Below are positions 2,121-9,605 of a stretch of DNA of 64,000 nucleotides, piece by piece. Position 1 is the first letter of the stretch. Each line of letters starts with the position of its first letter. The stretch is taken from contig JANHCV010000007.1 in the NCBI GenBank assembly GCA_025594325.1, positions 1,240,001 to 1,304,000 on the forward strand. Direction: 5' to 3'. The notes beneath the pieces were generated by a model. The model was not told where the DNA came from and searched no databases. It saw only the letters and a list, made by a program, of their open reading frames with translations. Made by a program: the position numbers and the translations under genes. The DNA comes from Blastocladiella emersonii ATCC 22665 (taxonomy: Eukaryota; Fungi; Blastocladiomycota).

Positions 2121-3333
2121 ATGCTCGAGATCACGCCGCACTCGGACATCCTGTTCGCCCGTACGGCGACCCCCTCCCTCGCCCGACCCCGGCTCCCTTC
2201 CCTCACCCTTTCGACCCTACGGGTTTAGACGCGGGCGACTCGGTCGCGCTGCACCTGAGCAACCCGTCGCCCGACCGCACCATCGCCTTCAAAGTAAAGA
2301 CGACCGCGCCGAAGCACTACGTCGTGCGTCCCAACGCGGGCGTCGTGCGGCCCAACTCGCGCGTCGTCGTCTCCGTCACGGCGTGCCTGCAGGCCAGCGC
2401 CGGGTCCGACGCCGCCGACCGCGCGATGCGCGGCAAAGACAAGTTTCTTGTCGAGGGCGCGATCCTGCGCCCGCACGAGCTCGGCGCGGATGTCGTGAGT
2501 TTGGTACGCTACGCTTGCTCGGTGCCTGGCCGAAAGATTCGAGTGCCTGACCGCACGCATCGTAGTGGCCCGCCATCTCTCCCGAACGGATCCACGAGCA
2601 CCGCTTACGCGCCGTGTTCCCTGCGGGCACGCACGTTCCGAACGGCCACCCGCAGCACAACCACCAGCAGAACCACGGTGACCCGCTGCCCTACTTCGCG
2701 CACCCGTCACCGCCATCTTCCGCGCCGCCGGGCAGCTACCGACCGCAGCACGACGACATGACGCTCCCGTGCGAGTGGCGCTCACTGACGCGCCCGTCGG
2801 GCCACCCGCCGCCGCCTCCACCGCCCCCGCCGATCCCACCGCGCCGCGGGATCAGCCCGCTCCCGACCTCGTCATCTCGCGTCGGCGGCCTGGTCCGCGC
2901 CACCAGCGACGTATCGCACGACCGCCGTGCCGCATCGCCCAGCGCGATCCCCGTCCCCGTCAGCCCGCACCGCCGCGCCGCGTCGCCGCGCCGTCCGCCC
3001 GATTCCACCGCCTCGGGCGGCAGCGGCGCGTTCCGCCACCTCGACGCGTCCGTGACCGCGTCCATGGACCTTCCCGCGCGCATAGCCCGCATCGAGGCAC
3101 AGCACGCCGCGCTGTGGGACGAGGTCCAGGCGCTGCGCCGCGTCGTCGGCGCCGTGGACCTGGACGCCGTGGGCGAGGATGGGTATCACGAGAGGCGCAG
3201 GTTGGGTGCTGCTGGTTTGGGGGCTGCCAAGGTTGGGCCGGGAACGGCGGCCGCGGGATCGTCAGCGTCGCTCTGGATCGCCATGGTCGTCGCGATCGCG
3301 AGTTTCGCGGTTGGGTTGTTGGTGAGGGGATAG
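2121..3333 (+). CDS. VAP/Scs2-like protein: N-terminal MSP domain, coiled coil and C-terminal TM anchor, 3 exons
   Basis: MSP signature [19 protein letters not shown] and KDKFLV. Introns at 2161-2228 and ~2506-2565. Coiled coil [19 protein letters not shown] and hydrophobic tail [18 protein letters not shown] at the C-terminus. Confidence 0.88.
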
Positions 3334-3415
3334 TGTGGGGTTCTGGGACTTTATAAACCGTTTGCTTCAGTAACCTTGCGCGGTTCCGACTGTTCAAATG
3401 TAACTGTATTCAGAT

Positions 3416-3862
3416 TCAGGGATTTTTCAGCTGTTCCGGATACCCGTAGACCACTTGGTGGGCAAACTTGTGTCCCATGCTCTCCTGGTACTTGATCCAC
3501 TCCTTGCTTGGTCCCTGGACCGTGAAGAACCAGTATCCATCCTGCCCGGATTTGGGCTTCTTCTCGACAAGGTCTGGGCTGGGTTGGTGACGAGCAACGC
3601 CACGCTTTGGCCCTGGAGAACCTTCTGCGGCTGAAGGAGTTACGGGCGAGGCTTCGCGTTGCAGTACGAGCGGAAGCAACAATTCGAGATGGTTCATGGT
3701 GTTGCTGAACGACGTATTGATCCCTTCGAGCTTGGGCATGGTCCCGGTCAGCGCAAATCCGAGCTCGCTTACGTAAGCCTGAAAGTAGCCGGCCTCAAAC
3801 GCGCTCATGTCCATCAACCAGTCTGTTACCTCCTCTGGGCGGACATGAGCTGATACTTGCAC
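3416..3862 (-). CDS. Orphan ~148-aa protein, island-1 family copy A1
   Basis: Intact ATG-to-stop ORF with clear similarity to the ORF at 4598-5050 (AHVRP, TGTM, HLELLLPLV, GxWFFT, YQESMGHKFA). Confidence 0.7.
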   Translation of the reverse strand: MQVSAHVRPEEVTDWLMDMSAFEAGYFQAYVSELGFALTGTMPKLEGINTSFSNTMNHLELLLPLVLQREASPVTPSAAEGSPGPKRGVARHQPSPDLVEKKPKSGQDGYWFFTVQGPSKEWIKYQESMGHKFAHQVVYGYPEQLKNP

Positions 3863-4461
3863 GGCTTGTAGCGGAGCCCGACGAACACGCGTTGAGTTCG
3901 AGCGGGATGCACAAGCTATGTTGCAAACGTCAGTAAATGCGTCCGGGAATGCAGGACTCGCTCGAACGTGCCATTTGCAGGCTGCGCAGTTTCGACCTGC
4001 GAGTGGGTGCTTCCTTGCTCGCTCGCGTGCGACGCAGCTGCAAGCGGTGTCGAGTCGTTGGAAAGCATGGTTAGTGGGGAGCTAGTGCGGTGGTCGTCAG
4101 TTGTTGCTCTCGCCGTTCGCTTGAGAGAGCAAGCTCGCTTGGCCGCTCCCTACTCGACGGCTCACAACACGGTGCATTCATCCAGCTGTCATACCGACAT
4201 TTCGCTTGTGGCTAACGCGACCTCCAAACATGCTCTTATCCACAATAATGACTTGATGCTCGCGCTCGTCGCCATCGAGCAACAAACGGAAGCCAAGAAT
4301 CAAAGCCGTTTGCGCGCCGTCTTCGTTGCAGCTTTGGTGTGCACGCACGCGAAGAACGAGTTTCAAGCCGAGTGTTAAAAATATTCATCCATTCCCACCA
4401 ACATGACGTTTAGTGCCAAAAGCTGCTCCGAGCGCGACGGAGGGCCGTGGAGCAATCCGGT

Positions 4462-4486
4462 GCGAGACGCGTCGATCAATCACGTG
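4462..4486. promoter_or_regulatory. Composite element GCGAGACGCGTCGATCAATCACGTG (MCB-like ACGCGT + GATCA + E-box CACGTG), copy 1
   Basis: Identical over 25 bp to 39530-39554, with a variant at 37300-37323. All three copies are intergenic. Function is inferred. Confidence 0.55.
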
Positions 4487-4597
4487 AGGCGCGAGACACG
4501 GTCAGCGGAATGCTCCGTTGCCGACCAGCAATGCATTCTCGATCACAGATGCCAAGATGTAGCGCAAAAACTCCAAAAGTGTTGAAACAGATTGTAT

Positions 4598-5050
4598 TCA
4601 CCAGCGATTTTGAACTGCAAACTTGTGCCCCATGCTTTCTTGATAGGCGAGCCAGTCCATGTTAGGCACTCGTCTGGTGAAGAACCAGATACCGAACGCC
4701 GATTCGTGCGAGTATACCGTTTCCGACTTGAATTTGTTTAGACGTCGCGGAGGTAGGCCCTTGATCGGTCCCTGCGCCCCCTCGCAAGGAGCTGAGGCCG
4801 CCGAGTCATCTTCAGGTGACGTTACCAATGGGAGCAGCAGTTCGAGGTGCTCCACAACATTCGCCAACGAAGTTTCGTCGTCGAACTCGAGCATGGTACC
4901 AGTGACGACCCACGCGAGTTCTTTTGTGAATGCCTTGAGGCAAGCACAGTAGAAGGCACTCCTGCGCGACACGTAGCTCGAATCTTCCGCGGGGGGTGCT
5001 TTTGGACGAACATGCGCAGCCTTCAGCGAGTTGAGACTCGAGCTCTTCAT
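4598..5050 (-). CDS. Orphan ~150-aa protein, island-1 family copy A2
   Basis: Intact ORF paralogous to 3416-3862, with conserved blocks HLELLLPLV and WxxYQESMGHKFA. Confidence 0.7.
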   Translation of the reverse strand: MKSSSLNSLKAAHVRPKAPPAEDSSYVSRRSAFYCACLKAFTKELAWVVTGTMLEFDDETSLANVVEHLELLLPLVTSPEDDSAASAPCEGAQGPIKGLPPRRLNKFKSETVYSHESAFGIWFFTRRVPNMDWLAYQESMGHKFAVQNRW

Positions 5051-5918
5051 GCCGTCAGCGTCGTGAACACCTACTATTCACTAACGAAGTCAGCTTTGAA
5101 AGCCCGCTCTGACAAGCTGCTTGCGGTAAGGGTAGACCAACGCAAGTTCCGGCGAACGCGAGCGAACTTTGTGCTCGCAACAGGAACGGAAACATCGTAC
5201 CAGCATCGCTTCCCGACTTGGTGCACACGTCGAAGCCTGTCTCGCTTACACTCATTTTAAATTTGGTCAAACGAAGCTGCCCCGAGATTGGAGAATGTCA
5301 GCGTTCGTTGAAGACCAGTTTTCACGGAGTGGAAAAGTGGACTTGACAAGCGGATTGGCAGTGCGAGGTGGCGACCTGTGCAAAGGAGCGAAGGAGAGCA
5401 GACCGACTTGCATCGCGCCTGCACGTTTTGAGACGCATGTAGTCGTTCGAGATGGTCAGCGCACAGCGCGTGATGCGCTGCGCCACCTGCTGCCTCGGGC
5501 GAATAGCTTGACAAATTCATGAATGCGCTTTGTAGAACGCTGTATCTTGACGGCACCTGTTTTCGTTGCATGACTCAGGCAATTCAACACGTCTCAGCGA
5601 GGTTTTGAAGTAGTCTGGCGGTTTCCTCCACCTCCGCGACGACGTGGACTCGCGCTCCCACTGCCGAGGGATCGAGTCAACTTTCAGCTTAGTTGTCAAG
5701 GAGGTTCTTGAAAGCGGTGGCGATGCCGCGCTCCTCGAGGCGTACGAGGGTCCGACAATTCAATCACGACCTCGCAGGCGGTCCTCGGCGCGACCGAGAC
5801 GGATCACGCCTCGTGAGCGACTCGATCGTTTCGTGGTGTACATATCCCGCGTCGTTCCACCATCCGTTCGCCGCTTATCCCACTCAAACATGAGTTTGTT
5901 CAAAACAAACATCTCTTT

Positions 5919-6359
5919 CTATTCATCAGGCTTTGATTCGCTGGAGCTCTCGACTGGTTCCGTCTTGTCGGTACCGTCCGCTTGCTCGACTGAGCGCAGC
6001 TTCGTCGATTCGTGCGGAACAAAGGTCCAGTGTCCGTAGAGTGCCCAGCGGGCTGCAGCGCGAACTTGTGTGACGGCAGCGAGGTCTCGGGGAACTGGCT
6101 CTTGGACTTGTTCAATCAATGATTGAAGGTGAAGGTAGATCTCCTTGACATCAGGTTTATCGGAACTGTAAGGTTTCTTGGTCACCGTTTTTGTAAAGCG
6201 CCGGGCAAACACGAGAAGCCGGTTGTAATCGGCCTGCTTTACAGTGTCGAGCAAGGGTCCTGGTGGCTTCGGGACCAAGTGCGACGGGCATCCTCGCATC
6301 GGACGCCGAGGAAGCGCGGCAGCATGCATTCGAGCCATATCTGGGGCGTAGCTGGCCAT
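5919..6359 (-). CDS. Orphan ~146-aa protein, island-1 family copy B1 (reading frame stays open upstream to ATG 6605)
   Basis: Paralog of 7038-7532 (RRPMRGxPSHLVPKP, KQADYNRLLVF, EPVPRDL, QVRA..RW..YG.W.F). ATG 6359 (MASY) aligns with the MASN start of B2. Confidence 0.72.
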   Translation of the reverse strand: MASYAPDMARMHAAALPRRPMRGCPSHLVPKPPGPLLDTVKQADYNRLLVFARRFTKTVTKKPYSSDKPDVKEIYLHLQSLIEQVQEPVPRDLAAVTQVRAAARWALYGHWTFVPHESTKLRSVEQADGTDKTEPVESSSESKPDE

Positions 6360-6660
6360 GGTTGGGGAAAATGCTGTAGGTCGGATGGTGGCCGTAGCGG
6401 TGAGGGCGGCGACACGGCCGTTTTGGTCTGAAAAGTGTCCTTGGTGGTCGTATCCGGTGTTGGGACTCTCTCGCGACCAGCGCTGCAACTCGACGTGAGA
6501 GAGACAGTGAGTGACTGGGTCAGGAGGAGCTGTGAGGAGGACGGCCACGTTGCCACAACTCAATGCACAGACAGAGCAATGGATTGACAAGCCGTTTGAA
6601 TGCATTCACGACAACGTACATCAGAAAGATGGTGTGATTCCGTACTGCGCGACGGCATGC

Positions 6661-6678
6661 GATCATGATGTGACGTCA
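6661..6678. promoter_or_regulatory. Duplicated upstream element GATCATGATGTGACGTCA containing the CRE/ATF palindrome TGACGTCA (upstream of B1)
   Basis: Identical over 18 bp to 7777-7794, at the equivalent position upstream of paralog B2. Confidence 0.5.
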
Positions 6679-7037
6679 TGAGCACGCGGACATGTTTGCG
6701 CGTCCCGTCTCGCCACGCGACGCTGGGGCACAAAAACGAGAACAGTTGCAGACTCGATCGCAGATGATGAGAACATGCAGCGCAAAGTACTTCCAAAAGC
6801 GCTGAAACGGGTTTTGTTCACCAGTACGATGCCAACAGACTATCAGTGGGAGCGGATTGCTGGATAACGCGAGAGAGCAAAGTCCTGACAATTTATACCG
6901 CTATTTTCGGCTCAGTTCGTGCATGCTCCGTTGCGCGCGACTCGCTGCGTTACCTGAGCGCTGCACTACTCCTATGCTGCGGCATAAGACGAGAAACAAT
7001 CTCATATCCGTGTCGCATAAATGACATGTATATTTTT

Positions 7038-7532
7038 CTACGCAGGTCGTTCTCGCATCTCGTTGACCGAGTTCGGATCCTCGCCCATCTCCTCCTCCAA
7101 ATCGCTGGACCATGTCGTGCTCGCGATATCGTGTGAATTGGTCGACGCAAGCAGTTCAAAGTGCCAAACGCCGTAGATTCCCCAGCGCGACGACGCGCGG
7201 ACTTGAGCAGGAGCGGTGAGATCTCGAGGAACTGGCTCTCGAACGCGGTATGGCAACGATTCGAGGTGCTTGAGGACCTCGGCGTCAGACGGTTTCTTGG
7301 CAAGGTATGGCTCCTGCGCAACGCGCGCCGTGAGACGGCGGGTAAAGACGAGCAGCCGGTTGTAGTCGGCCTGCTTGATAGTGAACAGGGGAGGCCATGC
7401 CGGCTTCGGAACCAAATGGGATGGGTGTCCGCGCATCGGGCGACGAGGTCGGGCGGCCGCATGAATCCTGGTTGGGTTTGGCGCGAAGCCAACCACGGGT
7501 GGGGAAGCAGAGGAATGGTGGTTGCTGGCCAT
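7038..7532 (-). CDS. Orphan 164-aa protein, island-1 family copy B2
   Basis: Intact ORF with extensive identity to B1, as above. Confidence 0.72.
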   Translation of the reverse strand: MASNHHSSASPPVVGFAPNPTRIHAAARPRRPMRGHPSHLVPKPAWPPLFTIKQADYNRLLVFTRRLTARVAQEPYLAKKPSDAEVLKHLESLPYRVREPVPRDLTAPAQVRASSRWGIYGVWHFELLASTNSHDIASTTWSSDLEEEMGEDPNSVNEMRERPA

Positions 7533-7776
7533 GGTCCCAGTGCGACAGTTTGCGTTGTGGCAGAATACGCTTGAAGCGAGCGCTTTTTGTTCAGATGCTC
7601 AGCCAAGGAGCGTGAGAGCGAACAGGTTTGGGAGATAAGCGGTCTGGGCGGCTGCATTGCCGCGATTCCAAGCACGGACTGAGCTCTAGCGCGCAGTGGT
7701 TCAGCAAGCCATTTGAGTGCATTTGCGAAGATGAACATCGGCACGACGAGGGGAGCAACGCCGCGCGACGCTGGGT

Positions 7777-7794
7777 GATCATGATGTGACGTCA
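7777..7794. promoter_or_regulatory. Duplicated upstream element with CRE/ATF palindrome (upstream of B2)
   Basis: Identical to 6661-6678. Confidence 0.5.
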
Positions 7795-7971
7795 CAGACG
7801 AGCTCACATGCACGCGCATCCCGTGCCCCGTCTGCTCGACAGCGTCACGACACGGCAGCACGACCGAGAACACACAAGGACGAGGACGACCGGCCGACGA
7901 GGGGCGACATGGCGCAACGAGCGAAATGAACCATGAACAGCTGGAGGTCCTCGGCGTGGCCGCCCGACACG

Positions 7972-7995
7972 GCGAGTGCGAGTGCGAGTGCGAGT
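7972..7995 (+). repeat. (GCGAGT)4 hexanucleotide microsatellite
   Basis: Read directly from the sequence. Confidence 0.85.
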
Positions 7996-8137
7996 GGGGT
8001 AGGTCCACGTTGAGCGGTCGGGAACCACCCACTTCGCGGCCGGCGGGGCGACTCCATGCACTAGACCGACGGAACCGTCGCAGTTGAGGTCGGTTGGTGA
8101 CATGAGCCAGGACTTGGACTTGGACTTGACCTGGACC

Positions 8138-8646
8138 TCATGTCGGCCGACTGGGACCTGGAGTCGAGGAGTGGACTGGGAAGTTAGTCGAGATCCTTGA
8201 AGAGAGAATCGAGCATGAGCGTACCAAACAAGGTCAGTCCTTGGTACAGAAGCTGAGCTTGATGGCGACGTGCTTGAACGTGCGCGAGCAGGCGCGCGGG
8301 ATCGAGATGCGTCGCGAAGATGGCACGGAACAGCTCGCACTCGGTGAGACGGACACCTGAGTTCGAAGCAAAGTCAGTTTTCCAGTCCTTTGGAAGCAGC
8401 CGTGCGAGCGTACCGTCATGGTGAAGGACCCGAGTCAAACTTGAGGTGGTCCCCGTTGACCGAAGTTGAGCCCCGCCGTTGACGCGCGCGATGAAGAACA
8501 CGAGACTACGGCACCCTAAACATGCAGTGGAAGCTGAGTGAGCACGGACTCGGAGTGCGAGGAGCGGTGGATCCGCTGACGGATCTCGAGTACTTGGACG
8601 TGATGTTGACCTTGTGCGACGGCGTGTGGTTGATTATGCAGCGCAT
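8138..8646 (-). CDS. Putative 3-exon orphan protein (~125 aa)
   Basis: ORF 8184-8501 is bounded by a TAG acceptor (8507-8506) and a 49-nt GTACGC...CTAAC...CAG intron (8224-8176). Exon 1 from ATG 8646 joins in frame through a weaker GTACTC donor at 8593. Confidence 0.3.
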
Positions 8647-9605
8647 CGTCGATGCGGCAGGCGGTCCATGTCGGGCGAGCCGAGGAGGTGTGGACGAGGA
8701 CCAGGCGGCCGCAGCTGGTCCGAGAGCGACGCGCCGGTGCGCCACCCGCCGCTCGCCGGTGCAGAACCACCGCGCCGACCTGTACAGTGCCGCGCCGGGT
8801 ACAGACGCAGACTTGGCCGAGCTGGATAAGGTCGAAGCCTACATGAGAAGGTTGCGTGAAGGAACGTGAAGGGACGTGAAGTCCGTCGAGATGTCAGGGA
8901 CGCGTTTCACGGAAACATCAGCGGACACGGACGGTGCCAAAGAGCGACGACGACGCGTGGCTGGCACTCGAGGCCGCGCGGGTTCTCGTGGGCGGCTGTA
9001 CAGGTGCGACTGAACGCGGGGACAAGCCCCGTTGAGCGAGCCGTCGACCAGAGCGGCGCGGCACCGCGGCGGCGTACCGTGATGCCAAACTTGATTCGCT
9101 CGATCAGCGCGACGGCCGCGCGGCGGCGGAGCGCAGGCAGCGGCGGCCGGGGGCGACCGCATCATCGCGGTGCGAGTTCATGGGTGTTGGGGCGTGCAGC
9201 AGCAGCAGCAGCCGAACGAGGGCGCGCGCGGGTCGTCGTCGAGCGATACATGGTGCGCGAGCGCGACGTTCATGGAGCCAGCGGGGCCGGGCCGCCGGCG
9301 CAAGCACGGAACGCGCGTTCGTCTGTGGCCCGCACGCGACTCTGAAACGGCACGCGTTGCGCCTCCGCTTCGAACTCGGCGGACTGTTGGGCTGCGTGAT
9401 GCGAGGAGATATCTTGGTTAATCATGTACATGCGGGGAAGGGAGGGTGCCGGGTCGTAGTAGGTCATGGGCCCCGAGCAGAAGCGCGCCGCCCGCTGCAG
9501 GACGAGGTCCGACGCGGTACTGAACAAGCCTCCGCCACTGAGCGAGCTCTTGCGACATTGATCGAACTCGCGTATATTCCGAGTCGTATCATCAACGACG
9601 ACGAC

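Follow-up and report, generated by a model that had tools for sequence, protein, structure and literature searches.

Four open reading frames (ORFs) of Blastocladiella emersonii ATCC 22665 are most probably intact protein-coding genes of one multigene family of this organism, to judge from sequence comparisons with their relatives in the same genome. B. emersonii is a saprotroph and a model for zoospore biology and fungal phototaxis. The ORFs lie in a stretch of 64,000 nucleotides (nt), hereafter the window, which corresponds to positions 1,240,001–1,304,000 of contig C19 in an assembly of 32.65 Mb and 21 contigs. Two of them (A1, A2) are of one type and two (B1, B2) of another, and both types are best regarded as diverged subfamilies of a single family, which appears to be real, previously unrecognised and largely unannotated. 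The four genes, with the scores obtained from hidden Markov models (HMMs) of the A and B cores, are as follows:

3416–3862, minus strand: A1, A-subfamily gene (A core HMM, E 6e-44)
4598–5050, minus strand: A2, A-subfamily gene, ATG start, 150 amino acids (aa) (A core HMM, E 4e-46)
5919–6605, minus strand: B1, B-subfamily gene (B core HMM, E 8e-49)
7038–7532, minus strand: B2, B-subfamily gene, ATG start, 164 aa (B core HMM, E 2.9e-47)

Along the direction of transcription the gene order is B2-B1-A2-A1, with four separate genes divided by spacers of ~430–870 nt. A1 and A2 are 39% identical (E 5e-29), and B1 and B2 are 60% identical (E 1e-48). The start of A1 at 3862 is a bacterial-style GTG; its first ATG would give a coding sequence (CDS) of 132 aa at 3416–3814, and the similarity between A1 and A2 (AHVRP) runs upstream past this ATG to ~3856. 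For B1, the long ORF from 6605 carries 82 extra residues without conservation in the family, and the CDS is likely 5919–6359, encoding 146 aa with the same MASYAP start as B2. The motif strings quoted in the initial annotation were all found in the translations: the helix-1 strings, HLELLLPLV (twice), HLQSLIEQV, HLESLPYRV, GYWFF, GIWFF, GHWTF and GVWHF. Its statement that the proteins have no signal peptide or transmembrane segment was also borne out, as the maximum Kyte-Doolittle mean over 19 residues is below 1.0 in A1, A2, B2 and B1 from 6359. A hydrophobic N-terminus (1.78) is present only in the long B1 reading from 6605.

The common ancestry of A and B, which had been proposed from an ordered signature of helix 1, HL[EQ]xL...V, a linker and GxWxF, could not be established from the four sequences alone. 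BLASTP comparisons of A with B were not significant (E 0.16–2.1), and profiles of two sequences each gave an hhalign probability of 0.6% (E 0.099), with the HLE helix already as the sole local match. Six-frame searches of the B. emersonii genome with each pair then supplied 8 A-like and 8–9 B-like copies beyond the window, and it was the addition of these paralogs to the profiles that made the link detectable. Ten-sequence A and B core profiles were aligned by hhalign with a probability of 96.3% (E 2e-9, score 56.2, 95 columns), in one block whose register comprises helix 1, the LTG loop, HLE.LLPLV and G.W.F. In the controls, the scores of 150 column-shuffled B profiles averaged 10.3 ± 2.1 and reached at most 16.5, and a reversed profile scored 13.0; profiles from which the window's four copies had been removed scored 55.4 (E 2.3e-9). 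Independently made alignments gave a probability of 95.1% (E 3.2e-8, 103 columns). The HMM of each subfamily also matched sequences of the other, with E values of 1e-4 to 1e-2. When 19 cores were aligned with MAFFT, the same register was recovered, and little or no variation was seen at the G and W of G.W.F.

If A and B were instead two unrelated small families lying side by side, their signature would be due to chance or to a convergent composition of amphipathic helices. The failure of the four window sequences to match each other significantly would then be expected, as would the mean A-versus-B identity of only 18% in the aligned core. However, a profile score of 56 against a control maximum of 16.5, which holds without the window copies, a register contained in a single block of 95–103 columns, and the cross-matches between subfamilies make this explanation extremely unlikely. 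Both the ordered signature, which is present in all four proteins, and common ancestry in the proposed register are thus upheld. In the maximum-likelihood tree, the two subfamilies are separated by one branch (support 86/86).

The family is larger than the window suggests. Genome-wide matches comprise 10 A-like and 11 B-like copies. A combined A and B profile identified 27 loci in the genome, and a profile of B and distant members identified 40 loci at E ≤ 0.01, on contigs C1, C6, C7, C15, C17, C18, C19 and C21. The initial annotation had described a domain that duplicated at least twice and kept its frames open. Repeated duplication was indeed found, but its extent had been set too low, with ~20 A/B copies and at least 40 loci when a third subgroup is included. 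As for the open frames, they are kept in the four ORFs, whereas some of the copies elsewhere have stops or no start codon.

In the common core of ~100 aa, an amphipathic helix (D..RL..F.R.LT) leads through an LTG.P....PS loop into a second helix (HLE.LLPLV, or VD.LE..LP in the distant members); next come a variable linker rich in Pro and Ser and a beta-hairpin with G.W.F at its end. In the B type, a basic motif A.P.R.hydrophobic.R (A.LPRR.MR) is located ~25 aa after the start Met. This motif is missing from the A type, to which a C-terminal helix with W..[YH]Q..MG.EFA.Q is added; in the A type, the basic motif has apparently been lost and the C-terminal segment gained. Proteins of the third subgroup are 200–600 aa long and have the two helices (K..D..RL...RKLT in helix 1) and the basic motif (H..ARPLR.VR, ~25 aa after Met). 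The hairpin is missing from them, and helix 2 is followed by low-complexity or coiled-coil tails. The R-P-L-R of the distant members was considered as an oomycete-type RxLR motif and dropped, given the absence of a signal peptide, the PRR.MR of the B type and the saprotrophic habit of the organism.

Two inverted arrangements were observed among the loci. On C7, three distant members recur at identical scores in mirror order on the opposite strand ~26 kb away (144.9–148.1k and 174.1–177.3k), which indicates a large inverted duplication, and a similar inverted pair is found on C1 at 3430.3k and 3433.2k.

Substitution patterns support the claim of the initial annotation that the open frames reflect selection. 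In all close pairs, the proportion of nonsynonymous differences (pN) was 0.25–0.50 and that of synonymous differences (pS) 0.63–0.84, the latter at or near saturation; the sequences are very diverged and were aligned under protein guidance, which counts against these values as evidence for intact genes, and only B1/B2 (112 gap-free codons; pN 0.254, pS 0.632, omega ~0.22 after Jukes-Cantor correction) is free of the bias. Identity was 0.30–0.47 at the third codon position and 0.53–0.79 at the first and second positions. Among the six frames, the called frame alone had zero stops together with the lowest pN/pS, and this was the case in six pairs. Since pN lies far below pS, an asymmetry confined to the called frame, purifying selection within pairs is confirmed. 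Because the synonymous sites are near-saturated, pN is much lower than pS and only the called frame is open, the duplicates appear to be old and to have been kept under protein-level constraint. Intact and decayed copies together are the pattern expected of a birth-and-death family. Birth-and-death evolution is seen here as local tandem and inverted duplications, old divergence, purifying selection on the survivors and decay of some copies.

The genes are set in a compartment of atypical composition:

3400–8500, strand not applicable: island of ~55% G+C, versus 65–70% in the flanks, containing A1, A2, B1 and B2

The island sits between a gene with a VAP/MSP domain and TAF5. Pfam assigned the flank products to a mitochondrial carrier, an MSP/VAP domain, and the TAF5 NTD2 and WD40 domains, all eukaryotic housekeeping functions. 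Genome-wide, all A/B copies lie in islands of 52–58% GC within a background of 65–73% GC. The G+C content at third codon positions (GC3) is 0.54–0.68 in A/B family genes versus 0.86–0.97 in the adjacent housekeeping genes, and the island's G+C is low because its genes lack the third-position enrichment. Two distant family members (C7:78.8k and C17:1919k) have a GC3 of 0.92–0.93. Repeat-induced point mutation (RIP) as the cause of the low GC was rejected: its criteria are TpA/ApT above ~0.89 and (CpA+TpG)/(ApC+GpT) below ~1.03, and the island has values of 0.51 and 1.13, respectively, with a CpG observed/expected ratio of 1.19. No boundary or terminal repeats were found at window positions 3000–9000, and the ORF list and Pfam scans revealed no transposase, integrase, capsid, polymerase or reverse-transcriptase genes or domains in the island.

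Several further observations weigh against reading the four ORFs as intact genes. A usable start is missing in 4 of the 10 A copies genome-wide, a few copies contain stops, and A1 itself has no ATG upstream of the region it has in common with A2. None of the ~20 A/B copies is present in the public protein set, and their GC3 departs from the codon usage of the genome's established genes. From such observations one could argue that the ORFs are decayed remnants of a transposon or another repeat, with frames open by accident in a 55% GC island. ORF length alone is weak evidence against this, since ORFs of ~150 codons are not rare (an estimated one or so by chance per island) and chance ORFs of similar size overlap the four, among them a 360-aa ORF at 6950–8032 and several antisense ORFs. 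However, third-position divergence far exceeds that at the first and second positions, in six independent pairs the called frame alone combines an absence of stops with the lowest pN/pS, and frames have remained open across ~20 copies despite saturated synonymous sites. The island, moreover, shows no terminal repeats at its borders, no transposase or reverse-transcriptase domains and no RIP signature. We therefore regard accidental openness as very improbable.

Alternatively, A and B may not be native genes but may belong to foreign or mobile DNA that makes up the islands, for example the remnant of a virus or cargo carried by a mobile element. The confinement of all A/B copies to low-GC islands fits this idea, as do the scatter of the copies over several contigs and the copying of pairs as units. 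Against it stand the two distant members in normal GC3-rich genes mentioned above, one of which is annotated as a normal gene, and the lack of integrase, capsid and polymerase genes and of boundary repeats in the island. A search with the pattern HLE[LI]L[LQ]PLV revealed no related locus in 2.9 million viral contigs or in metagenome contigs of the Joint Genome Institute (JGI). On this evidence a foreign origin is very unlikely, and native genes of a B. emersonii family remain the preferred reading.

Copies of the two subfamilies recur as ordered neighbours. In the direction of transcription, B precedes A on one strand not only in the window but also at C19:709k/707k, C19:755.1k/755.7k, C19:757.7k/758.4k, C19:1230k/1228k and C21:1030k/1029k. 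For these six pairs, the matrices of A-A and B-B identities were correlated (Mantel r = 0.816), a value reached by only 1 of 720 permutations, namely the true pairing. Since the two matrices correlate, the B-then-A pair can be regarded as the unit of dispersal, and the duplicating unit was, as far as the sequences tell, the same-strand B-then-A pair. The closest relative of the window island is the island at C19:707–709k, whose B copy (709k) is sister to B1 and B2 in the tree. In the window, B and A were each duplicated once more locally, yielding B2-B1-A2-A1.

At one locus, the two subfamilies may have been joined. In C19:757.5–758.7k (locus L016, positions 1303–2529), B and A are in one frame with a single TGA between them (L016:2083–2085), and the A part has no ATG before helix 1. 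A candidate GT..AG intron of 150 nt (L016:1958–2107) would remove the stop and fuse B with A. Some B-A pairs may thus be single two-domain genes. A candidate intron of 68 nt joining B and A at C19:755k was rejected, as it did not restore the frame.

Searches for relatives elsewhere returned little. No Pfam family scored above threshold for the four ORFs, the 19 cores or 8 distant members. The best Pfam row for B1, DUF5984 (PF19446) at residues 128–188, was rejected, since it reached E 0.03 and 14 bits versus a cut-off of 23.8 and was found in only 1 of the 19 members. The best E in a sequence-profile search of the PDB was 1.4; in structure comparisons, Foldseek matched PDB entries at E ≥ 1.7, and the VIA wide structure search gave Z ≤ 5.2, under its noise level of 7–8. 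The two helices (model residues 33–84) superpose on many generic helical hairpins, and the top structural rows were the GA/albumin-binding module, protein A-like bundles and de novo helical designs; the family's beta-hairpin and motifs are unmatched in these, and the superposition is no evidence of kinship. A SAP- or HeH-like helix-loop-helix was dropped as having no Pfam or structural support. The ESM Atlas held no usable match for B2 and at most 0.77 for A2. A word-indexed search of 5.8 billion proteins gave nothing with the B profile, and a wider profile recovered only the first sequence of the query itself. In viral and metagenome contigs, no relative was found with the A profile.

An HMMER search of 1.84 billion representative proteins returned 9 matches, 2 of them true. 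Both are hypothetical proteins of B. emersonii: H9P43_006291 (KAI9175927.1, 349 aa; E 5.9e-7) and H9P43_009541 (KAI9150926.1, 484 aa; E 6.2e-4). They have the A.P.R..R motif, helix 1 and helix 2 in common with the family; however, these uncharacterised proteins have a greater length, tails of coiled coil and of low complexity rich in Ala, Pro, Ser and Thr, and no G.W.F hairpin. Of the seven other matches, three were spurious, comprising two repeat proteins that matched G.W.F through NGxWSF repeats and one translation of a repeat array. The remaining four were long proteins with several short matching stretches and were not credited as relatives. The family thus appears, so far, to be restricted to one lineage, within the limit that protein collections would miss relatives with atypical codons that are unannotated in other Blastocladiomycota.

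The annotated members are the GC3-rich H9P43_009541 and the intermediate H9P43_006291 (C19:1042k; GC3 0.75), and none of the ~20 A/B copies is among them. The A/B genes were probably missed because their GC3 of ~0.6 differs from that of the genes used to train predictors (~0.9). About 20 genes of one family, maintained by selection, are absent from the reference protein set of B. emersonii, with at least 40 loci when distant kin are included; the published assembly of this species has 21 contigs and a gene count of 10,031 (PMC9730499). As a domain with no Pfam entry, solved relative or fold match, it would constitute a new family entry. Multigene families that are confined to one taxon and turn over by birth and death are commonly found; the mildly unusual feature here is that two homologous subfamilies travel as an ordered pair.

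Structure prediction supplies some hints on what the domain might do. The AlphaFold2 model of the B2 core, made with the 19-sequence alignment, had a predicted local distance difference test score (pLDDT) of 76, with values above 90 in the helices. It consists of a helix, a loop, a second helix and then a beta-hairpin (SRWG. / G.W.F), of which GxWxF is the second strand. The model of A1 was weaker (pLDDT 62), with the same two helices and a C-terminal helix and no predicted strand. Conservation falls on hydrophobic residues and on K/D/R/E pairs, and none of these looks catalytic. We tentatively suggest that the domain could be a small non-enzymatic protein-binding module. Adjacent, co-copied homologous subunits often form paralogous heteromers. 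It is conceivable, if doubtful, that B and A likewise act as partners: separate proteins would form a paralogous heteromer, and a fused two-domain protein would be a pseudo-dimer, in which the two helical hairpins would pack into a four-helix bundle. These functional suggestions are weakened by the lack of any homology behind them, with no Pfam, PDB-sequence or fold match, and by the fact that the correlated A/B distances show co-duplication, not functional coupling.

A more specific proposal is that the B-then-A pair, as a heteromer of diverged paralogs in an early-diverging fungus, resembles a two-component selfish or self-recognition system, toxin-antidote-like or allorecognition-like, that spreads and diversifies as a unit. 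Such a system would explain the co-duplication of the pair, the fast divergence under constraint, the decay of single copies and the confinement to an atypical, unannotated compartment. We nevertheless consider it quite improbable. Nor is a secreted-effector role indicated, because the proteins have no signal peptide and the organism is saprotrophic. In Ustilago maydis, tandem clusters of effector genes form lineage-specific families with birth-and-death turnover. The present family resembles these clusters in its tandem paralogs, rapid divergence, lack of outside homologs, mixture of intact and decayed copies and atypical composition; it differs in the missing signal peptide, the saprotrophic habit of the organism and the two homologous subfamilies that travel as an ordered pair.

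B1 and B2 also have several conserved upstream blocks in common, which include two copies of a palindrome:

6671–6678, strand not applicable: TGACGTCA palindrome of B1, in the best-conserved B1 upstream block, 312 nt upstream of the ATG at 6359
7787–7794, strand not applicable: TGACGTCA palindrome of B2, in the matching B2 upstream block, 255 nt upstream of the ATG

In four B genes, TGACGTCA is located 315–345 nt upstream of the B core (window positions 6671 and 7787, L021:6823 and L022:3796). The whole 64-kb window contains only 3 copies, two being those upstream of B1 and B2. With this placement and the upstream blocks common to B1 and B2, the B genes look like regulated transcription units. 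It is possible, and we put it forward with reserve, that they have in common a promoter element of the cAMP response element (CRE) type, a site for basic leucine zipper (bZIP) proteins, and would be co-regulated through it. A further conserved block, ATGCAYTCAAAYGGCTTG, which reads MHSNGL, is found upstream of B1 (~6580–6605, minus strand) and of B2 (~7700–7722, minus strand). It is in frame with the B1 ORF and out of frame with B2, and because of the latter it is more likely an upstream ORF (uORF) or an element of the 5' untranslated region (5'-UTR) than part of the protein.

The 360-aa ORF at 6950–8032 (minus strand) overlaps B2 in another frame and crosses the B2 promoter. It looks like a chance ORF, since homology of the B gene and of the sequence upstream of it, at the DNA level, accounts for its similarity to other loci. 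Past the upstream edge of the B genes, window positions 8842–9177 (minus strand) have a weak translated similarity to L021:7967–8236 (E 1e-6, 40% over 95 aa). This similarity, found in the window island and in the sister island at C19:707–711k, may represent a further common element or GC-rich low complexity.

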